Below, piece by piece: positions 61-52,830 of a DNA stretch of 64,000 nucleotides. Where the stretch lies: NCBI GenBank assembly GCA_024704765.1, contig JAKMXF010000099.1:796419-860418 (forward strand), given 5' to 3'. Every line of letters begins with the position of its first letter. The stretch's first letter is position 1. A program made the position numbers and the translations under genes. The notes under the pieces were generated by a model. It had not been told where the DNA came from. It worked only from the letters and a program-made list of their open reading frames with translations, and searched no databases. This DNA is from Oopsacas minuta (taxonomy: Eukaryota; Animalia; Porifera).

Positions 61-450
61 TTGCAAATCACAAGAAAAAGAAAATTGATCAATGTTGAAA
101 ATGAAGCACGACTTAGTAAATGTAAAGAGCAACTTATTAGTGGTTCCTACACACCATTGGAATTTATCCGAGCAATTAGTCACACTGTGGGTTCTCTAAC
201 TAACTTAAACACAGATCCTTACAATTCTGATGATGAGGGTGATAATGATGTAACTGAATTGGCACAAAGTTGATCTTCGGAAAATCGAAATTTGTGTGTT
301 GTTTGTTTAAGATTGAGAGAAACAACGTGTGTATTTGTGCCATGCAAGCACACAAATGGTTGTCAAAGATGCACGATAACTATTGAAGAATTAGGGCAAA
401 CATACTCTATTTCCGATCCCCAATAGAATATACTTTTCATATATTTACTA
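61..450 (+). pseudogene. 3' end of a MULE-type transposase with C-terminal C3HC4 RING finger (degenerate; continues off the left edge)
   Basis: ORF 61-273 (KLSKCKEQLISGSYTPLEFIRAISH) resembles the tail of the MULE at 35800-38758. After one in-frame TGA the same frame reads CVVCLRLRETTCVFVPCKHTNGCQRC, then a frameshifted ...RSPIEYTFHIF. Confidence 0.7.
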
Positions 451-2261
451 CGGGCATTCAAAAGTTCCGACCCTACCCCGTATTTTTGTACTATACAGAA
501 TATACATGTACAATTGTTAAATTTTCTCGAAATAATCACCATTAATGTCTATTACTAGTTGTAGACAATCTAGCCATTAAAAATACATTATTATACAGTG
601 AAACCTCTGGAATCGAGCATGCTAGATACTGGGAAAATTTCTGACGCCCTGATTGTGGAAATTCCCCGATTCTGGATTTCAGTGTAGTATTGTGTCAAAA
701 TCACCATTTCCCGTATATATGTAGTTCATATTATGTCATACTATTGTTTCGTATTGCTAGTGACCCTTAACGTTAAAATAATTCATTCTGCTACATATTT
801 ACCCTAAGAGGCGGATTGAATTGATTTCTTGTTCACCTACGTAGCATTTATATTGTTTTATTCGATAATTATTGCGAAAATAAAATTTATTGAGTTGATT
901 TCAGTATTGGTGCCCCGATTGCGTAGGAGATTTTAGTATTAGTTCCATGCAAGCTGAAAGAATTAGATTATCAGGGTTTGCCCCGATCCCCCGATTCCAG
1001 AGGTTCATTTGTATAGGAAAATATTTTCGCAAAATTCAAGTGCCCCAATTTCAGAGGTTCCCAGATTCCAGAGGTTTCACTGTAGTCCCCGGGCGGGATA
1101 TTTTTTAGGGATCTCCAAATTGCGTTCCCTAGGTCGATTCTGGTATCAAAATGCATGCCTGTAAGCTCCTTTTCCAACATTGCAAAGAGCCAGAAATCAC
1201 AAGGAGCGAGGTCAGGTGAGTAGGGCGGGTGATCTAACACACAACTCTCATTCTATCCAACTCTAACTTTACGAGCTTAGTTTTATGTGGGCGTGCATTA
1301 CCGTGCAATAATCGCATGCCCCGCGCTCCAGACTTTGGCCTTCGCTCCCAGTAATGTTTTTCCACTTCTGAGAGGCAACTGTTGGCATAAAAGTCCCCAG
1401 TAATTGTCTTCCCTCTTTTGGTATTATAATCTCAGCAACTGGGCCATGTGCATCAAAGAAAATTGAGTACCGGACCTCCTGATCTCTGAAGTCCGGCCTA
1501 GGATTGAGAGGAGGCACCTCACCTTTTACGACCCATACCTTATTTCTTTCCTTGGATAGTGGCTCATCGTATCTTATCCAAGTTTCGTCACCAGTAATGA
1601 TTTCTGCTAGCCTTCTTGGATCCGATTCTTTATACTCGGAGAGCATTTTTCTACACAAGTTACCCGACGGTCCTTTTGGTCCTCTGCAAAGGAATGCGGG
1701 ATCCACCTCGAACAAATTTCGGTAACTCTAAGCTCATCGATATGGAATGAAGAGTCCCCGTTGAGCTCCCTACACTAATAGCTAACTCCTTAACACTGAT
1801 ATGAGGATCTTCTTCCACTCTTCAGCGAATTTCAGAGGTGTTATGCTAGTGACAGCGGATCTGGGACGCCCGATTCGTTCCTCATCTTCCAGTGACTCTC
1901 GTCCTTCACGAAACCGCTTGGCACACTCCTTCACAGTATTATATGAAAGGCTAGCATCTCCGTAAACGACTTCCAAGTCAATAATGCTATCCTTCGGGCC
2001 AATACCAAGAAGCATGCGAATTTTGATAGAGGATCTTTGCTCAAATTTCAAATTTGAAGCCCGAAATACTTGAAAATACAAGGATTGGCAAAATTGAGAA
2101 ATTTAATATAATCCTAACTAGAAAACTATTGACGATATGGTGAAAGTTAAATTAGTTCAGAATAGATACTAGAATAAGGTTCATTATGAATCCAGATATG
2201 TAATATAATATCTTATATCTTAAAATTATATGACCAAGGTCGGGAACCTTTTGAACGCCCG
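451..2261 (-). mobile_element. mariner (DD34D) transposon, decayed
   Basis: TIRs cgggcattcaaaagttccgacc and ggtcgggaaccttttgaacgcccg, with TA at the left end. Minus-strand fragments carry IITGDETW, IFFDAHG and HPPYSPDLAPCDFWLF, and end NGDYFEKI*. Several frameshifts. Confidence 0.93.
596..1082. mobile_element. pogo/Tigger-type MITE nested in the mariner
   Basis: TIR cagtgaaacctctggaatc / gattccagaggtttcactg with TA on both sides. Removing it restores the mariner reading ...IPPGDY|NNVF..WLDCLQLVIDINGDYFEKI*. Confidence 0.9.
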
Positions 2262-20956: not shown

Positions 20957-22519
20957 GAATCCGAATATCGCATATTTGAGTATCTTATGTTTAAGTTTAT
21001 TGTTGTACTTTGGACATTCAAAAAGGTCCATCTTTGTTGAATATCTGGATAATACAACCACTTACTAATCAAAATTCTACAAAAAACGTTGGAAATACTC
21101 CCCCTCTACATCTATGCATAGTTGTAGCTTTTCAACCCACTTTGAAAATGATTTTGTGTACTCGTCTCTGTCTACTGAATTGAGGTAGTGTTAAAGTCAG
21201 TTTCCTAGCTCTTGTCGGGTATGAAATAGCAACCTCCGAGATATTTTTCAGCTCAAGAAATAGCTAGAAATCACCAGGTGATAAATTTGGGGAATACGGA
21301 TGATGTTTCATCGTTTCAAACCCGATATCCTCAATGACTTCCCTAACATATTTTGAAACATGAAGTCTGGCATTATCGTGGAGAAGTTTGATTCCTCGAG
21401 TTCTTGAACGTTGACGTCGTGTTTTATAGAGTTTCTCGACTTCTCTTAGGCATATATCTGCGTAAAATTCTCCATTGATTCGTTCCCATTTAGGCACTGG
21501 TATTTGAGCCACTGGCCCATACGCATCAAAAAATATCTCTAGAGAACCTTATCGTCTCGGAAGTCCGGACGTACCTTTTCGGGGGGATGATAACGGGGCG
21601 CATGCAATAGGTCAAATTTTGATGTTGTCGATATAGAGAATTCATTTTGGCTATGCAGTCGATATATTGAATTGTATTTTTGCTATGTTGTCAATAGATC
21701 GAATTGTATTTCAGCTATGTTGCCGATAGTTCGAATTTACTGATTGATAACAAATGAATAATCTTGAAAATCATAATACTGAATGAAGAGGATGAAATAG
21801 AATGAAAAACATAATAATGAATGACATAGCTAAAATATTTCGATCTATCACAACATCAAAATTTCCTATTGCATGCCGCCCGTTATTATCCCCTCGAAAA
21901 GGCACGTCCGGACTTCCGAGACGATAAGGTTCTCTAGAGATATTTTTTGATGCGTATGGACCAGTGGCTCAAATACCAGTGCCTAAATGGGAACGAATCA
22001 ATGGAGAATTTTACGCAGATATATGCCTAAGAGAAGTCGAGAAACTCTATAAAACACGACGTCAACGTTCAAGAACTCGAGGAATCAAACTTCTCCACGA
22101 TAATGCCAGACTTCATGTTTCAAAATATGTTAGGGAAGTCATTGAGGATATCGGGTTTGAAACGATGAAACATCATCCGTATTCCCCAAATTTATCACCT
22201 GGTGATTTCTAGCTATTTCTTGAGCTGAAAAATATCTCGGAGGTTGCTATTTCATACCCGACAAGAGCTAGGAAACTGACTTTAACACTACCTCAATTCA
22301 GTAGACAGAGACGAGTACACAAAATCATTCTCAAAGTGGGTTGAAAAGCTACAACTATGCATAGATGTAGAGGGGGAGTATTTCCAACGTTTTTTGTAGA
22401 ATTTTGATTAGTAAGTGGTTGTATTATCCAGATATTCAACAAAGATGGACCTTTTTGAATGTCCAAAGTACGACAATAAACTTAAACATAAGATACTCAA
22501 ATATGCGAAATTCGGATTC
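20957..22519. repeat. large inverted repeat (arms ~20957-21655 and ~21826-22519) containing the 3' half of a DD34D mariner
   Basis: ORFs 21264-21512(-) and 21964-22212(+) encode identical peptides (LLHDNARLH...PYSPNLSPGDF). I found only three substitutions in the ~580-bp core of the arms. Confidence 0.95.
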
Positions 22520-23817: not shown

Positions 23818-25824
23818 ACGGGATTTTGACAAATTATTATCATCTATGGTAACCACTGTAACTCAAAAACTTGCCAACTTTATCATGACCAATTTTTAAA
23901 AGTTTTACAAAACATCTTTACATCTTTTCGTACTCTAATTTTGAATTTTAAAAGATGCGAGATTTAACGTTCTACAGCTCATCAAAGATTAGCGATAATG
24001 CGTACTAAGCAAAGAAATTGGGACAAATTAAAAAATTGCTTTTTTGATTTGGAGACTTGATATTCTACATATCTATAATACATTTAGTTTGGGCATAAAT
24101 GTACTGTTTTGTGCGCTATGAAACCATTCTAGAATTTGACTCGACTATTGGTGATAGCGAATTAACATGTTTTAAGCACTTGATATTTCCAATTATACTC
24201 CGGTTTTATCAAATTTGATAAAATCAGTGCTAGAGTTCTGAAAATTTGGTTTTAAGTTGTTTGGGTGTAGGTTTCGTGCTAATATTACATTTTTCTAACC
24301 AATGTTGGATCATTTAGAATAAATTAGTGAATATATTTTTCAAGTGATATATTCAGCAAGGTTCATCCTGATTCTCAAGTGCCATACGCCTAAAATAGCA
24401 CCCACATTTTTTAATAGGAGCCGTAGAGACATATTAGCTGATATTCATGCGCCTATAGGCGCGCAGCATACGACTTGATAATACCTTGCATATCAGACTA
24501 GTGAATTCAAGGCACATAATGTTCAGTATATCCTATAGCTGGAGAGTAACTATCATGATGCCAAAAAAGTCAAATTTGAGTAAGGTGGGACTGTGGTTGA
24601 ATGGTATTACGTTTCATAATTTCACGTCAACACACAAACAGTCCTACAATAGAAACGGAAAATCAATAATGGACAAGGTTATGATTATATACTGAATGTA
24701 TTCAAGTTGAGTTGAGAATTAATTGAAAATCCGTGTGCGGATTTTATTGGAGAATATATAATTATTTTCTAACAAACTGACGGAGTGTGTAACGATAACC
24801 ACCACAGTCGAGACGCGAATTGCAAAGCAAGACACAAAATATTTCCGCGAAGAATAGAAACGGCGAACGGCAAACTGCCGAACTACTTGGCTTGTCTCTA
24901 TCACGGTTTGGTATATAGATATATTATTCTTCTATTTAAATGCGGATAAATAGAAGAATAATATACATATATATATCAAACCATGACCTACGGAATATTT
25001 GGAGGCCATGGCACTGGTTCCGAAAATAGACCAAGGATGTGTGACTAGGTCGAATGGTATCTAAGGATATTTCAGAACAGCTCATTTTGCCCAATAATGC
25101 ATATTTGTTGAAGAAGAAATTGTACAGCACGATATGCAAATATATCTCAGGAATGTGGCAAAATATGTCTACTAAGCATTAAATAGGGAAAATTTCATTC
25201 TTTGATTCCTTGTAAAAACATAAGTATTGCATCATTCATCCCATGTCCGTATATGAATTGATCAATAGATAGTTTTATGCGAAATACCAAAATTGCACTA
25301 CAAAAGTTGGCTCGTTCTTGAGTTACTTTAGAGACCAGGGATGGCACATTTTTATGAATATCCAATTATATCTTATGTAATAATTAAAATTTTCTTAAAA
25401 TCTGGATAGCCAATAGGCAGTAAATACAAATATGCTATCCCTTGTCTGTAATTGTAACTCAAGAAATCGTCAACTTTGGTATTACAAATATTTCGTAAAG
25501 ATATCTATTGATTATTATATATATGTACATTGAAATGAAAGATGGAAGATTTAACGTTTTAGAAGGCATCAAAGAAACACATATTTTGCCAAATTCTTGA
25601 GATATTTTGGTATATCATACATGAAAATTTGTTCCTCTACTAGTATGGAATACATTTATAGTCGAAAATGAGCCGTTTCTGAAATAATAGTCACCCTAGA
25701 TATTAGCCGGCCTGGTCACATATCCCTGGCCCATTATTGGACGCCTTCTATTTCGTAGGTCACGATTAAACCTAAGGTGAGTACGTCAGAAATATAGATT
25801 ATTAATATTAATTTATAATTAAAG

Positions 25825-28800
25825 TCAAAAATATAGTTTCTTCCTTAAATGACTAATATCCTCAGTACATTGTGAAAAAGTTTGAGATAGTAAAGAAACC
25901 CTGCGTCTGACTTCTGTCATTATGTGCAAAAATTCTTCATATCGACAATACTGTAATACTAAACAAAATGACTGAATGAATATCGAACCATGGGAAGTAT
26001 GTCTGAATGATGAATATCGCTGCACAGTAGAATTTCCAATAAAAATATCAGAGAGGGCCGACAGATTTTCTGGTTCCTCATCAATAGATCCCGTTGGATT
26101 AAGCAAAATACGAAGTGGATGGATAGTCGGATGTAATTGTTCTTTTCCAGAAGTAGATATTTCACTATCTTCCCTCACTTGATTATTTTTCATTATGTTA
26201 TTACCATACTCTGAAAAAAACATATATTTTCGATGAGATAATTTATTTTCTCTAAGCTGAAATACTTCTATTTTAGACCCTCGACAGGCTTGAAGAATGA
26301 AAATCTTTGGTTTACCAGCTAAAGATTCACAGTAAATATTTGAAAATTCGGAGGTAATCTCATCTCGAGAAATTTTCTTTCCATCAGATAGCAAAATGTT
26401 GTCATCTTCGTCACCATGGGACATCACAACACAAAAGAATGAATCATAAGAAGAATGGTCTAAACGAGCAATTTTTATAATCTCTTTCTTAAATTCTGCT
26501 TTAGTTAAGTTTTCTTTAGCAATGACAACATATTGTAAATGTTCAAATGTGTCACGAAGTGATATGAGATCTAGTTTAGATCCTTTTCGAACTGATGCTT
26601 GATCAGTCGCAAATATTTCAATGTTCACAAGAAATGCTATTCCGTGAGGATTTGAATTCATCCGATATCGATCATGATGAGGCTGTCTATCAATATTTTT
26701 GCTATTATGAAAGGTCAAAGGTGTTATTAGTCCCTTACTGATATTCTTGTCAATTAAACTACGCAAAAACTGATGACCTGGGTTTCTATACTCTCTACAT
26801 AGAACAACATACAATTTGACGGCCCATAAGGGACCTTTATGAACTAATTCTTCCAGAAGATTAGCAGAATTTTCTACCTGAGAATAACCCTTGTTGTTTA
26901 TAGCATAAATTCTTTCTGAACTAGCTAGGCCAAACTTATAGAGTAGAGGTGATAAGTCTTGGGAATTTATGTGCTGTATAAAGGTATCTTGATTATTGAA
27001 AATGAATTTTGCTATAGAAGTGTTATCATAAAACTTGGTAATATAATCCAACAAAAAATCATTATCATTAAAAATGTGGTTCCAATTAATCTTACATTGT
27101 TTGTTGTAACACCATGATTCCCTAGCCCTAGAGTCCGTTAGCAACAATTGGTCCAAACAAATGCATGGATGCTCCATTCGATCCAAATCAGAAAGTCTGT
27201 CACAAGTACAATCTAATACAACTTTAGCCAAATTTCCACAAGGTATCAGTTTTCCCTGAATATCAATGATAAGCATCTGAAGAAAAATTAAGTAGTCCAT
27301 TATCTCTGATTTATCATATTGATCTGCGTAAGGATTTTCTTGTTCCTCCAATGAGTTAATTTTGGAGAAATTAATTTGAATGTATGGTTTATCTATGCAA
27401 AATTCGATAGCAACCAGGAGAGAAGGACAGACATAGAAAAAGGCACAGTCGAAGCCGAATATAGGAAGAGATAAGTTCTTTTCAACATTTCTACGGATGC
27501 AATAAGATAGGAGTGTAAAATAGAGGGACGCGGGAATAAATCCGTCTGGGAAAAACAAGTAAAACGAAGAGAAAAATCGATGATTGGGTAGCAATGATAC
27601 TAGTTTTTTTGAAGAAGTCGTGAAAAGATAAGGAACGTAATAATAATTTGATAATCCTTCTTCAGATTGGCTATCAATCAAAATGCCGTATATTTTAAGT
27701 AAATCTAAAAGGGAATCTTTTAAAACCCTAAGATTGAGTGAATTTAAAATATATTCAAGCAAATTACATGACAATTTGGCCTCAGACTGGCAAATTCTCA
27801 GATCCCTAACTAAAATCTCGGTGTTTGTGTTGGTAAACCTTTCTAGAAGAGCACTACCATACTGCGGAGAAACAATATGATAAATAAGATCTAAAAATTT
27901 CTGAACGTCAGTTATAATTATTCCCTGCTTATAAAAGAAAAAACCAATATCGTGGAAAAGATGGAGAAAATATTCCAAATCTTTCAAACAACTGCAAGAT
28001 TCAGCCAAAAAACATATTCGTCTGTGATTTATAATTGGCAGCTCTTCTCGTAAAATAATATTTGCGAGCTCTATCCATTTAATAGGAATAGATTGCTGAA
28101 AAGCAATATGGTCAGAGAGTTGTTTAACAATGTCTTTAAGTTTAGATATTCCAGATATGTAGGGAGATTCGGGTAGACAGCTTATCAAAAAAAGTCCATC
28201 ATCTTCATGAACTAAACTGAAAGCATTATTTCTTCTGTTCATGTGTGATCTTATAGTTTCTAAATGTTTCTCTGCTCGCTTTATAGGATTGATCACACAG
28301 TCAGATTTGCTGAATACGAAGATGATTTTAGCAGGTCTTTGGTAAATGTCATTCGATGCAGTTTTACTGACGGAAAATATGGCATTGAGCCAAAACTCAA
28401 TAGCTTCCAAATAAGTAGTTGGCACACCAATTTGTGATCTGAGAGTATGTCTGTCCATTCTCTCAGTCCTCACATTGATTGGGTTAGTAAGTTCATCAAC
28501 TGATAAGTCTACCAGTAGTAAATAGATAGCTCGGGGGGAAAGAAAGAGAGAATGAAAGCAATATAAATAATTCTGCCCTGCGAAATCCCATGCTGTTAGA
28601 AAGTTAGACTTTGATGATAGCTCGTCGGTTCCACGAAGTGTGGCATGAATTTTCTGGACTGGAATTGATTTGGCGAAATCTTTGGAGTTTTCTTCGAATA
28701 ATGTCGGAGCAACAGCAGCGGAGTCCACCTGAGAACCCAGATAATCGTCAAACTTTTCTTCAGTTAGTAGATTGAGCTCCTCTCCTCTAGGATTTAATGA

Positions 28801-30894
28801 TGGTGATAGGAAGTGTTCTTGTGAATCAAAAATGTTGGAGGATTTTGAGTTGTCCGATTCTGGGATAAAGGTTTTGTGCTCTGAGAAAGAATGATTTCGT
28901 AAACAAAATTCATTTTGTAATTTCTTATCATATTCTAAGTACTCTTGAGTCATGTACTTTACAGCCATATCTTGCCTGGTTTCCTCTAAATTATTAGTAT
29001 ATGTCATCAAGTCTTCTATCTGCTCCCAATCCTGAGAAATCTTATGCACCTGTAAATCGAATTTGTTTATAAATGGAGTACTTTCTTCGTCGATTTTGAA
29101 GGGTAAACCAGTTAGATTGCGCAGGAGAGAGGTCTTGCCTACTCCTTCAGGCCCTACTATCATCAAACGATAAAATCGAAAAGGTTCAGACCCTTCCAAA
29201 CAAGCCATCATATACGCTCTTCTGAATGCATCCCCTTCAATGTTTAAAATAGAAGAAAGATCTTTATTGGAACTAAAATTAAAACCTCCAACTAAACCAT
29301 CAATGACCTGAATATATTCAGACTTGCGAGATTCTACTATTGAATCATATAATATGGTGTGTAACTCCGAAAAATAATTCTTTTGAATTGACAGAATAAA
29401 ATTAGCTAGCAAAGATGAATTCGCGCCAGAAAGCGTCTTATCAATAGCGTGTACAATCATCATGTTTTTGTAATTGGTGGGGTAGGAGTATGTTGATGGT
29501 TGAAACTTTTTGACTGCTTCCGAATTACAGTTGGAAACTAATTGGCTAAGAAAGATAGCTCTAGGAATATCAGGGAAGGAATTCGCAAGCTCGTTTGAGA
29601 AAATATTGACCTTAAGAGATGTTTTATCATTTAAAGATACTTGATGCTGTTCAATATCACAAGTTAGAATGAGCACCACAACTAGACTACATTTTCCACA
29701 TAGATTTTTGTTTTTATTGATAGTTTGTGTATAGCTGGATTTACCAACCAACAAAATATCCTGAGCAATTCTGAAGTTCATCAATTGAAACTCTATCTTA
29801 ATATTTTCAATTAACTCTGGGATAAAATTTAAATTGCTTTGTGTAAAATTTTCGTTTGTAAGAACCATGAATAGTCCTTGTGATGATGAGCTTGCAGTCA
29901 CATCATCTTGGCCTTGAACATTGGCATTTCTAGAAAGATAAATATATTGTCTAAGAGTATTTTGTATAAAAAATACATTATTCGCACCAGAGTAATGACT
30001 ACATGATTCAAGGAATTGGTAGTAAGTATCCCTGGTGTTGAGAAATAAATTGATTAATTGAGATTTCGATTGAGTTTTTCTTAGAGTTTCAAATAATGAT
30101 ACCACAGGCTGATGAGGTTTGATACCAGGAGAAAGTGAAGATTGATGAGATGATGAATAACAAAATAAGGTGTTTGTACAAATGTTCTTTTCTGGTGTTG
30201 GAGGGGAGTTTGCCTGGGAGATATAGTCAAAGAAGAGGAGAACTGGCATAGCAGCCTCTGAACTGACTAAAGATGCTATCTTGTTAATAAGAAATGTATG
30301 GGAGTAAACAGGATTGGAGTCTAGGCCTTCGTGGAATTTGTAACTGAGAATACCCCGAGAATCTTTAATAGAGACAGCCTGACCAATACAAAATACGACC
30401 AAACTGTTGAGAGACGGGGAAGAAGCAATAGCTTCATCTATTAATAAGGGAAGTGCCTTATATTTAGACACATCATAAATTCCTGCTTTAACATTAGAAA
30501 ACTTAAGTTTCTGATGATCTCGAATATAAGCTGTGTCCAAAATTTTCACATTAAAATTCAGGAAAGTTAAAGTTTTCTCAATCTGCTTTGATTTGAGTCT
30601 CGCTTGGAGAAGATCAATCTCGCAGCTTTCAAATATAATTATCAAACAGAGACCACACTTTGCATTGTGCTGTGAAATATGAGGATTAGAGTTGAGTGCT
30701 TCAATTGATATTTGAAATTCATTTTCGTTAAAAGACTGAGTATAAGGGTTAGGGCTAGTTTTAGATTTTACAAAAGACACGGGTGTATCCATAACAATCA
30801 ATTCTCCATCACTATCTGAGTCAAGAGGTGGAGTATTTGCTCCCGAAAGGCCAAGTTGTCTAAAATTCTCATCAGATATACTTTGTGAGGTCAT
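25825..30894 (-). CDS. Roco-caspase fusion protein: 2 degenerate caspase-like domains, Roc GTPase, COR, CARD-like domain, caspase (peptidase C14)
   Basis: Uninterrupted 1689-aa ORF. P-loop GPEGVGKTS (aa581), WDFAGQ (aa769), G4-like FSKSD, COR-like PIKW..EL / LHLFHDIGFFFY / YYVPYLF, six-helix death-fold pattern (aa~1295-1385), and a caspase from YRMNSNPHG with SHG (H1493) and QACRG (C1537). Confidence 0.93.
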   Translation of the reverse strand: MTSQSISDENFRQLGLSGANTPPLDSDSDGELIVMDTPVSFVKSKTSPNPYTQSFNENEFQISIEALNSNPHISQHNAKCGLCLIIIFESCEIDLLQARLKSKQIEKTLTFLNFNVKILDTAYIRDHQKLKFSNVKAGIYDVSKYKALPLLIDEAIASSPSLNSLVVFCIGQAVSIKDSRGILSYKFHEGLDSNPVYSHTFLINKIASLVSSEAAMPVLLFFDYISQANSPPTPEKNICTNTLFCYSSSHQSSLSPGIKPHQPVVSLFETLRKTQSKSQLINLFLNTRDTYYQFLESCSHYSGANNVFFIQNTLRQYIYLSRNANVQGQDDVTASSSSQGLFMVLTNENFTQSNLNFIPELIENIKIEFQLMNFRIAQDILLVGKSSYTQTINKNKNLCGKCSLVVVLILTCDIEQHQVSLNDKTSLKVNIFSNELANSFPDIPRAIFLSQLVSNCNSEAVKKFQPSTYSYPTNYKNMMIVHAIDKTLSGANSSLLANFILSIQKNYFSELHTILYDSIVESRKSEYIQVIDGLVGGFNFSSNKDLSSILNIEGDAFRRAYMMACLEGSEPFRFYRLMIVGPEGVGKTSLLRNLTGLPFKIDEESTPFINKFDLQVHKISQDWEQIEDLMTYTNNLEETRQDMAVKYMTQEYLEYDKKLQNEFCLRNHSFSEHKTFIPESDNSKSSNIFDSQEHFLSPSLNPRGEELNLLTEEKFDDYLGSQVDSAAVAPTLFEENSKDFAKSIPVQKIHATLRGTDELSSKSNFLTAWDFAGQNYLYCFHSLFLSPRAIYLLLVDLSVDELTNPINVRTERMDRHTLRSQIGVPTTYLEAIEFWLNAIFSVSKTASNDIYQRPAKIIFVFSKSDCVINPIKRAEKHLETIRSHMNRRNNAFSLVHEDDGLFLISCLPESPYISGISKLKDIVKQLSDHIAFQQSIPIKWIELANIILREELPIINHRRICFLAESCSCLKDLEYFLHLFHDIGFFFYKQGIIITDVQKFLDLIYHIVSPQYGSALLERFTNTNTEILVRDLRICQSEAKLSCNLLEYILNSLNLRVLKDSLLDLLKIYGILIDSQSEEGLSNYYYVPYLFTTSSKKLVSLLPNHRFFSSFYLFFPDGFIPASLYFTLLSYCIRRNVEKNLSLPIFGFDCAFFYVCPSLLVAIEFCIDKPYIQINFSKINSLEEQENPYADQYDKSEIMDYLIFLQMLIIDIQGKLIPCGNLAKVVLDCTCDRLSDLDRMEHPCICLDQLLLTDSRARESWCYNKQCKINWNHIFNDNDFLLDYITKFYDNTSIAKFIFNNQDTFIQHINSQDLSPLLYKFGLASSERIYAINNKGYSQVENSANLLEELVHKGPLWAVKLYVVLCREYRNPGHQFLRSLIDKNISKGLITPLTFHNSKNIDRQPHHDRYRMNSNPHGIAFLVNIEIFATDQASVRKGSKLDLISLRDTFEHLQYVVIAKENLTKAEFKKEIIKIARLDHSSYDSFFCVVMSHGDEDDNILLSDGKKISRDEITSEFSNIYCESLAGKPKIFILQACRGSKIEVFQLRENKLSHRKYMFFSEYGNNIMKNNQVREDSEISTSGKEQLHPTIHPLRILLNPTGSIDEEPENLSALSDIFIGNSTVQRYSSFRHTSHGSIFIQSFCLVLQYCRYEEFLHIMTEVRRRVSLLSQTFSQCTEDISHLRKKLYF

Positions 30895-31508
30895 TAAATC
30901 TTCAACAAATTATCAGAAAATTAGATAAATGTATAATCTAAATTTGTAACTAAATATAACACAAACGTTGATGACTGAAGTAATGCAGAGTCATCATCCG
31001 GTAACTCGAACATCAGGAGGTAAATCTGTCCGAAATAAGGGATGGCCTCAATTAAGGGAAATTACTGCTCATTGAGTATATTAATGATCACTTCAAAATG
31101 CAATACCTAGATCAAAACATTCATATGAAAATTATTTTAATATATATTGTGAATTCATATAGTATACAGTTAAGAGCGTCGAAATCCGGGTCAATTTGCC
31201 CAAACTTTAATTATATGTTCTTGGACTAAGGAAAAGGGCAAATCGGACAGATTGAATAGTACCAAAGAGGGTTGTACTTCTCTATAAAATTATGTTATGT
31301 CACCAAACTCATCTCAACGTTTACTGTGAGACGTTTGCTGTTTCAAGATTAACCATAGGAACTTTTAACCAGGAACAAGATTTACCAGAGAAATCTTTGC
31401 AAAGGAGAAGTTGGGAAAGCGTAATAAGGGTAGGAAGGATCCATAGGTTGAAGAAGTTCATTACTAAATTATTCAAATCAGAGTTTTGCTGTGTTCAATT
31501 TAGGACTA

Positions 31509-32853
31509 CAGGGTGTTAAGAAATTGATGCCCTAATTATATTTGAGTAACAGTTTGAAATCAGCGGTATAGAATGTGGTGATCACTTTCCAATATAACTG
31601 CCTTTACGTTTTATACATTCTTTAACTCTATTACACATCCCTAATACTAAATTCTCCAAAATTTCTGGAGATATCCTCGACCAAGCCAGCTTTACATGAT
31701 TTTCCAGCATCAAAACGTTGGTTGGAATAAGCATCATTTGAATATCATGTTAGACTATTGACCACAAATTTTCAATGGGATTGAGGTCCGAGAGTTACCT
31801 GGCCAAGTTTTCCTTGTCCAAAATTCGATTAAATTGTTATCACACCATTCTTGCGTTCTTTTGGCAGTGTGGGCCGGAGCACCATCCTGTTGAAAGATGG
31901 CTCGTGACATGTCTGGCAACATCTTGCGACGTAAAACACTCGCTTCTTCTGGTTGACGCTGCATAGTAGACATCAATGACTTATTCAATATCTCTCTTAC
32001 ATAATAATCCGCGTTAACAGTTTGACCTTTGGGGATGATATGGAGTTCTGATACTGCACGATATGACATCATTCCCCAAACGAGGATTTTTGAGGGGAAT
32101 TTCACGGTTTCAGTTGGTAAAATTTGAGACTGTTTGTAAGCCCAGACACGATCATTCTGATGGTTTAAGTGAGGATATAATTCGAAGGGAGACTCATCTG
32201 AGAACAGTACCCGGTGCCACTCTTCATTTTTCTAGGATTTCCGATCTTTACAAAATTGGAGGCGAGCCATCCGCTGTTTTTCGGTGATTTTTGGCTGTTT
32301 TTGAGGTTTAAAGGGCTTGACAGAGAGTGTACTTCTTAAATATGTATGTACTGTTACATGAGACACTGGGCATCTCTTGGAGTGTAAGCGCTTAGCCAAT
32401 CTCCGCGTTGATTGGTGTCTTTTGCAAATCGATTTTGCAATGACGATTTTAGCAATTTTTGTGATTGTGGATTTGCGTCTACGTCCAGGCTTGTTTTCGA
32501 GGGAGCGACATGACTTATTGCGGCTCAACCAACGTCGACTTGTTCGAATTTTTATTCCTAAGCTCTGTGAAACCCGTATCTGAGTCATTCCACTCAATAC
32601 CATTCCTACTGCCCTGCTTCTTGTGGCGGAAGTAGCTTCTTTGACAATTAGTATACGCTATAATTCGTACAATCGGGTTTGATAATATACAAAATAGAAA
32701 TTGGCATTCTGACTGAGAGTGATATACTAAAATTGTCTAAAACTGGTTGTCAAATTGAAATAAGAGTGGGTGTATTTCATAAGATTGAACACTGAAACTA
32801 TGGTTACATTATTGTAGATTAAGTGATTAGGGCATCAATTTCTTAACACCCTG
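31509..32853 (-). mobile_element. Tc1-like DD37E transposon, decayed
   Basis: Perfect 28-bp TIR cagggtgttaagaaattgatgccctaat with TA TSD. Fragments carry an HTH region, KILVWGMMS and FQQDGAPAHT...WPGNS.DLNPIE (D-37-E); frameshifted. Confidence 0.94.
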
Positions 32854-52259: not shown

Positions 52260-52830
52260 TACCTGCTAACCCTGATGGATATGTCACTGGAAGATATGAT
52301 GGACTTAGACAACATACTAGTAGACGAGGTGTTATATTTACAGGAAAATGAGGAGGCATGAAGCTAAATATTTTGTGCTAACAAACTAAATTTCGGTTTT
52401 TAGTGAAGGGGCTAGCACCAAATCTTTTCCAAACGGCTGAAAGATTGCTTTTGGTTCCATTTCCAACAACATATTTTTGTGAGACAACGTTTTCTTCAGC
52501 AAATTTTCTTAGGTCAAAACACCACAGGCGACTTGAATTCAGAGAAGATTTAAGGGTACAATTATTGAAGATTGAGCTAGAGATTTCTAAAATCTGTCAA
52601 GAAACAAAAAAGTTACAGCAATTCTAGTTTATAAGCCAAGTCAATGAGGAAATTGCAACTTCATTGAAGCAAATATTTTACAATAATAGTGTTGCAAATA
52701 GCATAGTAGTGTGCATACAATACTACAACATACCTAATTAGCATTCCAATGGCTAAGTAATTTGTGTTACCAATTAATCATTCTCTTAAATCTAAGTAAA
52801 TAGACATATTTAGTAAACATACAATCTGCA
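52260..52830 (+). mobile_element. Charlie/Buster-type hAT 3' remnant
   Basis: LLVPFPTTYFCETTFSS...RLEFREDLRVQL..IE.EISKIC. Segment 52555-52830 recurs inverted at ~56215-56510. A Charlie-like TIR cagtgcttctcaac lies at ~51177. Confidence 0.75.

Follow-up and report, generated by a model that had tools for sequence, protein, structure and literature searches.

Here we analysed a 64,000-nucleotide stretch of DNA from the glass sponge Oopsacas minuta (assembly GCA_024704765.1, contig JAKMXF010000099.1, positions 796,419 to 860,418 of the forward strand), referred to as the window over its whole length, and the long gene on its minus strand. The gene is a single open reading frame (ORF) at window positions 25825-30894, running from ATG to TGA in one exon and encoding 1689 amino acids plus stop. 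Its product consists of two dead caspase folds, a Roc-COR core with all nucleotide-binding motifs, a CARD, and a caspase whose Asp-specific active site is complete. A preliminary description of this DNA had listed Roc, COR, a death fold and a caspase; all four stand, and to them we add two dead caspase folds at residues 78-545 and a disordered insert in the Roc domain, which were absent from that list. The parts of the gene are as follows, with the basis for each in brackets (pLDDT, predicted local distance difference test; AF2, AlphaFold2).

25825-30894, minus strand: coding sequence, complete, single exon, 1689 amino acids plus stop (stop counts per frame)
30664-30894, minus strand: disordered N-terminus, residues 1-77 (pLDDT below 50)
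29920-30663, minus strand: pseudo-caspase 1, residues 78-325 (caspase-3 profile match, E 2e-7; hhalign 95%, E 3e-8)
29260-29889, minus strand: pseudo-caspase 2, residues 336-545 (hhalign 97%, E 4e-11; Gln451 kept)
28099-29187, minus strand: Roc G domain, residues 570-932 (Pfam, motif conservation, AF2 model, PDB matches)
28660-28899, minus strand: unconserved disordered portion of the Roc insert, residues 666-745 (pLDDT 26-35; 9-19% identity to relatives)
27070-28092, minus strand: COR-A and COR-B, residues 935-1275 (structure matches, Pfam COR-A in four family members, Roc-COR relatives)
26740-27027, minus strand: CARD, residues 1290-1385 (Pfam CARD of relatives, family profile, helical bundle in the model)
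25828-26643, minus strand: active-type caspase, residues 1418-1689 (Pfam, catalytic and pocket residues)
26416-26418, minus strand: codon of the catalytic His1493
26284-26286, minus strand: codon of the catalytic Cys1537

The reading frame is uninterrupted, as first claimed, with 0 in-frame stops compared to 95-167 in each of the other five frames. Since the frame stays open over 1689 codons while the other five hold this many stops, in surroundings of 33-36% GC content (approximately 35% for the genome), a chance open frame is excluded. An identical protein is present in the searched protein collection as P0001. The motifs quoted at the outset are all found at the residues given for them (GPEGVGKTS at 581-589, WDFAGQ at 769-774, FSKSD at 861-865, SHG with His1493, and QACRG with Cys1537), and the order of Roc, COR, CARD and caspase with an intact catalytic dyad is confirmed by Pfam, family profiles, the AF2 model and the relatives. 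Across the parts of the protein, identity is highest in Roc (56-82%) and the caspase (50-90%), and the dead-caspase module (16-62%) is the least conserved folded part.

The C-terminal domain matches Pfam Peptidase_C14 at residues 1418-1688 (E 2e-44). It also matches caspase-3, with E 4e-32 when the sequence is used and 1e-52 when the family profile is used. Each of the 27 family sequences has His1493 and Cys1537 and also Arg1436, Gln1535 and Arg1631, the last three of which form the P1-Asp pocket and are the equivalents of Arg179, Gln283 and Arg341. With the caspase fold, the SHG/QACRG dyad and the P1-Asp pocket all present in the sequence, the domain is predicted to carry out Asp-specific proteolysis. 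When known caspases are ranked against the family profile, caspase-3 comes first at 182 bits, followed by caspase-8 (161) and caspase-6 (149), and the CARD caspases are not the closest. The intersubunit linker at residues 1540-1615 is 76 residues long and is variable across the family, ranging from 35 to 105 residues. No CHAT match was found in the protease domain, which Pfam assigns to Peptidase_C14.

Pfam recognizes the Roc domain as two separate stretches (E 7e-10), at 39.6-45.2 bits where the cut-off is 27. Its motifs are G1 (GxxxxGKT, 581-588), G2 (Thr606), G3 (DxxG, 770-773), G4 (SKxD, 862-865) and G5 (SC, 905-906), and within them G581, G586-T588, T606, D770, G773, D865 and S905-C906 are invariant in 26 family sequences. 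This region is a Ras-like Roc G domain with the complete G1-G5 set, and these motifs do not vary across 26-30 relatives. Approximately 130 extra residues lie between switch I and G3, which in the AF2 model form a long helix and then a disordered stretch. The Roc matches of the nearest relatives outside the family are also split, which suggests that the insert is shared more widely.

A Pfam scan of residues 890-1290 of the window protein alone gave no COR match. We generated an AF2 model of residues 560-1420 from a 30-sequence alignment (mean pLDDT 75.6; predicted template modelling score, pTM, 0.76), and its best 36 PDB matches are all Roco proteins (E 7e-11 to 4e-3), among them LRRK2 (E 7e-11), LRRK1, C. 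tepidum Roco, M. barkeri Roco2 and the COR-only chains 3dpt. Pfam COR-A is reached in four family members. With phmmer, 115 Roc-COR relatives were found at E < 1e-10, and the outside proteins matched by residues 560-1160 carry Pfam COR-A and in some cases also COR-B. These matches place a COR directly C-terminal to Roc. Within the predicted COR-B (window 27106-27210), Cys1229, Cys1231 and Cys1262 are conserved in the family, with Cys1244 and Cys1246 nearby in the window protein. This cluster at residues 1229-1262 may form a metal site for which LRRK2-type COR has no known counterpart.

The nearest outside Roc-COR relatives carry Death, DED, Macro, NACHT, kinase/ZU5 or trypsin-like domains, and because of these partners we place the Roc-COR core in the invertebrate domain-shuffling network of death and immunity. 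Fusions among the distant relatives P0033, P0034, P0036, P0045 and P0065 include Macro-Roc-COR, NACHT-Roc-COR, Roc-COR-kinase-ZU5, DED-Macro-Roc-COR-Death and a Roc-COR-trypsin-like protease. The partner domains also bear on whether the protein acts in death at all. It could instead be a signalling scaffold-protease like the MALT1 paracaspase, which cleaves few substrates or itself, with the Roco part acting in membrane traffic as in LRRK2. Rocos of the LRRK type do act in trafficking. Additionally, a death substrate such as gasdermin is not reported for Porifera in a published survey. However, Death, DED, NACHT, Macro and protease partners are typical of death and immunity networks and the active site is that of a canonical Asp-specific caspase, and we regard a role outside death as improbable.

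The CARD is recognized less directly. A Pfam scan of residues 1270-1420 of the window protein alone gave no CARD match at E up to 10. In two relatives, P0029 and P0030, CARD scores 32.1 and 23.6 bits, respectively, against a cut-off of 23.9, and both align to residues 1290-1385 of the window protein. A profile of the 25 core members, built without P0029/P0030-type relatives, matches the Apaf-1 CARD at E 0.004, with Apaf-1 chains making up 13 of the 15 listed matches. When those relatives are included, 16 of the 22 listed matches are natural CARD-containing proteins (best E 0.003), with CARDs from Apaf-1, cIAP1, ASC, MDA5 and ICEBERG, and three further matches are designed proteins, one of them built on the Apaf-1 CARD template 1cy5. 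The AF2 model of residues 560-1420 contains a helical bundle at model residues 721-827 (pLDDT 80-94). Among protein-language-model neighbours, CARD clusters account for 54 of 100, which we take as a lead only. The CARD is assigned through relatives, profiles and the modelled helical bundle and not by the window sequence itself. It is kept in every family member, directly ahead of the caspase.

The N-terminal module likewise gave no caspase in Pfam scans of residues 1-330 and 320-560 of the window protein alone. Profiles do match PDB caspases, with E 2e-7 for residues 60-330 and E 3e-4 for residues 330-560. By hhalign, both folds match the C-terminal caspase of the family itself (95%, E 3e-8 and 97%, E 4e-11), and there is a further match between the two folds themselves (96%, E 1e-9). 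At the positions of the catalytic His and Cys, the first domain has Gln172 and Ile225 and the second has Thr411 and Val453. Cys occupies the Cys position in 0 of 24 sequences for either domain, and His occupies the His position in 1 of 24 for the first and 0 of 24 for the second. Both domains are pseudo-caspases, with a caspase fold that lacks the catalytic Cys and His.

An AF2 model of residues 1-565 was made from a 24-sequence alignment (pLDDT 75, pTM 0.77). It has 295 PDB matches at E ≤ 0.001, the 50 listed being all caspases, and VIA-align gives Z 17-18 against caspases. Ordinary caspases align over approximately 185-200 residues at 2.8-3.2 Å across model range 76..543, and a circularly permuted caspase-2 aligns over 200 residues within 230..456. 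In contiguous Foldseek alignments, the root mean square deviation (rmsd) is approximately 17 Å to ordinary caspases compared to 5 Å to the permuted caspase. From these ranges and the contrast in rmsd, each globule would be built from the large-subunit half of one repeat and the small-subunit half of its partner. The N-terminal module is thus predicted to be an intramolecular domain-swapped pseudo-dimer, as read from one AF2 model through aligned ranges and not coordinates. The tandem sits where other Rocos carry sensor repeats and, if truly a swapped single-chain pseudo-dimer, would represent a new use of the caspase fold.

A chain that carries both dead and live caspase folds could also work as a built-in cFLIP. 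In such an arrangement, an N-terminal dead fold would pair with the C-terminal caspase across the dimer interface, turning it off or on, with Roc-COR controlling the pairing. All three caspase folds are mutually homologous, and heterodimers of a dead and a live caspase are an established principle, as for cFLIP-L with caspase-8. The AF2 model (pTM 0.77), however, pairs the two dead folds with each other, leaving both central interfaces occupied (ranges 76..543 and 230..456), and relatives without the N-terminal module keep the remaining domains. Pairing of this kind is distinctly unlikely.

The family comprises more than 30 proteins in sponge-type assemblies. A word-indexed search returned 26 proteins including that of the window, at 35-64% identity to it, and Roc and Peptidase_C14 occur together in 23 of its 25 relatives. 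When residues 560-1400 were used in an exhaustive HMMER search, 17 representatives fell below 1e-30, and the scores showed a clear gap, with 244 bits or more inside the family and no more than 98 bits for generic Roc-COR proteins. The window protein is 59-63% identical to close relatives in other assemblies. The only named member is the Oopsacas minuta "caspase-3" P0018, a protein of 1936 amino acids from a 5811-nt gene in GCA_024704765.1; the others were drawn from ENA assemblies and one Logan assembly. All members are called as single long ORFs, and the family is essentially intronless. In a quick maximum-likelihood tree, the window protein falls into a well-supported clade with P0002-P0006 and its Oopsacas paralogue P0018 into a different one. 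The outgroup in this tree consisted of a NACHT-bearing form and forms without the N-terminal module. The family has diversified in sponges.

P0029 has a NACHT in place of the N-terminal module, and P0030 and P0032 are without the module; Roc-COR, CARD and caspase are kept in all three. P0029 (L001:3001-8214) is a 1737-residue ORF in which NACHT and Roc-COR precede CARD and caspase, placing two NTPase switches on one caspase chain.

Two relatives, the caspase-less P0024 and the short CARD-caspase P0071, were considered as natural split versions of the architecture. This was rejected because the missing half is adjacent or overlaps in another frame, and both loci are interrupted full-length genes. 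In an assembly other than that of the window, the loci L003:8001-12999 and L004:4420-9080 hold family members interrupted between the CARD region and the caspase, one as overlapping ORFs in different frames and the other as adjacent ORFs parted by a stop. These interruptions are pseudogenes, assembly errors or short introns. L003 also carries further caspase fragments, which suggests a tandem cluster.

The absence of true split forms is relevant to a more conventional function, that of an initiator caspase. Here, the CARD would recruit the protein to a separate CARD platform or filament, such as a sponge Apaf-1 or an NLRC-type protein, and Roc-COR would only localize or tune it. Every family member has the CARD directly before the caspase, as in caspase-9, -2 and -1, and a published survey reports CARD-NACHT-LRR proteins in sponges. 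On the other hand, no part of the protein is more conserved than Roc, whose G motifs are all invariant; this exceeds the needs of a tether, and our searches found no stand-alone CARD-caspase or caspase-less partner, the two apparent splits being interrupted full-length genes. We consider recruitment of this type unlikely.

We next turned to sequencing runs that contain the stretch of the gene. There are four, all of one sample. Three are DNA-like, with flat depth and Nextera or long contigs, and one of these covers the whole stretch with identical sequence. The fourth, X4, was taken as RNA from its depth profile and also has TruSeq adapter ends. Two features of the locus come from X4.

25795-30951, minus strand: transcribed span (X4 depth approximately 350-580 compared to 0-52 in the flanks; no joints)
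30949-30951, minus strand: probable 3' splice acceptor AG in the 5' untranslated region (UTR), 55-57 nt upstream of the ATG, where X4 contigs diverge

X4 depth is 0-5 just past the stop codon and approximately 52 upstream of the gene, dropping from approximately 350 to approximately 52 at 30951. Because there are no joints in X4, the coding region appears to be unspliced, and because coverage is continuous and of similar depth over the Roc and caspase parts, separate Roc and caspase mRNAs are argued against. The preliminary description had named separate mRNAs as a way in which the fusion might prove false; the joint-free, RNA-like coverage supports one transcript, though contigs are not strict proof of one molecule. 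Past 30951, X4 contigs run on with 11 foreign letters that have no exact match in the window, and the pattern with one mismatch occurs only at 52606 and 56455, no more than expected by chance. These letters could come from a spliced leader, a kind of sequence reported to be added by trans-splicing in the glass sponge Aphrocallistes vastus (PMC10282587), or from a 5' UTR exon lying farther away.

X4 differs from the reference at two positions in the gene, each at full contig depth. At 27670 it reads A rather than G, a synonymous change at Ser1075, and at 29999 it reads T rather than C, which gives Ser299Asn in pseudo-caspase 1. At both positions the reference base is seen in the three DNA-like runs, which come from the same sample. 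An expressed allele or RNA editing could account for the differences, and contigs cannot tell these apart.

The flanks of the gene are transposon relics, with no functionally linked neighbour gene. Two minus-strand ORFs at 31755-32603 were considered as upstream coding exons and rejected as mariner/Tc1 transposase relics. A mariner palindrome near 21264-22212 holds identical 82-residue transposase ORFs, at 21264-21512 on the minus strand and 21964-22212 on the plus strand. Given such relics on both flanks, and given that some family members elsewhere are interrupted, the gene might be a non-functional relic or an artefact of assembly or annotation in a transposon-rich region. This is already contradicted by a frame that is open for 1689 codons in a 35% GC genome, by the identity of the stretch in independent DNA runs together with high RNA-like coverage, and by 59-63% identity to close relatives in other assemblies with invariant catalytic residues. 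A relic or artefact is highly improbable.

By analogy with known systems, we lean somewhat toward the view that the window protein would be a self-contained GTPase-gated switch that activates its caspase in innate immunity or regulated cell death. Two established principles favour such a self-contained GTPase-gated caspase: dimerisation through COR is linked to the nucleotide cycle, and induced proximity can activate caspases that have long linkers. As in LRRK2 and bacterial Rocos, the Roc-COR core would drive oligomerisation in a nucleotide-dependent way. When the core changes state, two or more CARD-caspase ends would be brought together, and the 76-residue intersubunit linker would allow activation by proximity, aided by CARD-CARD contacts. 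The fast-evolving dead-caspase pseudo-dimer would most likely provide input as a sensor, or autoinhibition; being the least conserved folded part, it fits what is expected of an input module. The modularity of the family supports the GTPase-gated switch, since the N-terminal module is exchanged for NACHT or absent while the remainder is kept. The initial proposal, in which Roc-COR stands in for the apoptosome and would control the caspase through nucleotide-dependent dimerisation, is plausible and compatible with the anatomy found here. Such a mechanism would parallel both the Runella Roc-COR-CHAT protease and STAND-ATPase platforms such as the apoptosome.

Several points weigh against this switch or complicate the initial proposal. 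The C. tepidum Roco dimer is the GDP-bound or nucleotide-free state and GTP favours monomers, so a scheme in which GTP binding produces the dimer and thereby activity may be inverted. GTP binding, oligomeric state and proteolysis of the window protein are all predicted. Activation by proximity is an assumption, because the caspase is closest to the effector caspase-3, then caspase-8, and not to the CARD caspases 9, 2 and 1. That a CARD has been conserved between COR and the caspase is an argument for homotypic CARD contacts still being important. The conserved dead-caspase tandem in the place of sensor repeats complicates the switch as first proposed, which does not account for it, and its reading as a swapped pseudo-dimer comes from one AF2 model based on a 24-sequence alignment and from aligned ranges only. 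Lastly, no gasdermin is reported in Porifera in a published survey, and the analogy to the bacterial substrate may not carry over. The CARD and the dead-caspase module suggest extra layers of control.

Studies of the evolution of cell death and innate immunity in animals have yet to settle how caspases first came under the control of upstream switches. The known caspase activation platforms are STAND ATPases or death-domain assemblies, such as the death-inducing signalling complex (DISC) and the PIDDosome. In sponges, whose lineage is among the earliest to branch within the animals, this family unites a live caspase with a CARD and a Ras-like Roc-COR switch in a single chain. A bolder extension of the GTPase-gated switch, which we view as rather doubtful, would make the Roco-caspases a third, GTPase-based class of caspase-activating platform in animals. 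The sponge dead-caspase pair would then be an integrated decoy or receptor that binds caspase-targeting pathogen factors or an endogenous ligand, leading to Roc-COR oligomerisation and firing of the CARD-caspase.

Since the gene is intronless, expressed, approximately 5 kb and directly clonable, control of the caspase by GTP state or COR dimerisation is testable by ordinary biochemistry. With a protease as its simple read-out, the protein is also a natural system in which the output of Roc-COR can be studied, which is relevant to the mechanism of LRRK2. It is the triple caspase fold, together with this direct testability, that makes the family noteworthy.

No description of an animal Roco-caspase was found in the open-access literature, an absence that is not proof, and Roc and COR go unmentioned in the amphioxus domain-shuffling paper. 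The earlier statement that no characterised protein has this architecture holds for animals within that literature. It needs narrowing in two respects, as uncharacterised Roc-COR-caspases are already in databases (from Lingula, Exaiptasia, Potamilus and Oopsacas) and a Runella Roc-COR-CHAT protease has been purified and assayed. The architecture is real and undescribed for animals in the literature searched, yet it is not unique or categorically new.

The closest comparison is the Oopsacas paralogue P0018, which has the two dead caspases, Roc with its insert, COR, CARD and caspase in the same order as the window protein. Over the full length identity to the window protein is 35-44%, rising to 56-57% in Roc and 58-70% in the caspase, in ranges that include the relatives from ENA sponge-type assemblies. 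P0018 differs in belonging to another paralogue clade and in the greater length of its N-terminus and Roc insert; its annotation says no more than caspase-3, and its function is undescribed. Outside sponges, Roc, COR-A and Peptidase_C14 occur on one chain in Lingula anatina (XP_013407220.1 and XP_013412607.1), Exaiptasia diaphana (KXJ13106.1, "Caspase-8") and Potamilus streckersoni (KAK3578651.1). These proteins are distant, scoring 54-60 bits over Roc-COR compared to at least 244 within the sponge family, and they gave no CARD by Pfam and no dead-caspase module by phmmer. Unlike in the window protein, the order in Potamilus is caspase, Roc, COR and Death, with the caspase N-terminal and the Death domain C-terminal. 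All of these fusions are uncharacterised.

LRRK2, LRRK1, C. tepidum Roco and M. barkeri Roco2 have the fold of the Roc-COR tandem in common with the window protein, in which the G motifs are intact, despite sequence identity of only 10-15%. The output of the window protein is a caspase instead of a kinase or nothing, and it has the dead-caspase module rather than ARM, ANK or LRR repeats, as well as the interswitch insert of approximately 130 residues. Like cFLIP-L and other pseudo-caspases, it retains a caspase fold without catalytic Cys and His for what would be regulation. Unlike cFLIP-L, it has two dead folds in tandem, on the chain of the live caspase itself, and they are predicted to pair with each other. 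The apoptosome (Apaf-1 and caspase-9) and inflammasomes of the NLRC4/NLRP1 type likewise couple an NTPase oligomerisation module to a caspase through CARD. However, they use a STAND ATPase, whereas the window protein has a Ras-like GTPase with COR and carries switch and caspase on one chain.

The gasdermin-activating protease of Runella zeae is a Roc-COR-CHAT protein that has been purified and assayed, cleaves its gasdermin, and requires its His and Cys (bioRxiv 10.1101/2021.06.07.447441). As in the window protein, Roc-COR lies upstream of a clan-CD caspase-like protease, which in Runella is described as executing a cell-death programme. The Runella protein differs in being bacterial, in having CHAT rather than C14A, and in cleaving after Leu rather than Asp; it is without a CARD or dead-caspase module and is encoded beside its gasdermin substrate. 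The window protein may function in a similar manner but is not a member of these bacterial gasdermin-associated proteases, as its gene has transposon relics for neighbours and its protease domain has no CHAT match, and the two fusions are likely of independent origin. The sponge family would represent an animal parallel to the bacterial Roc-COR-CHAT gasdermin activator.

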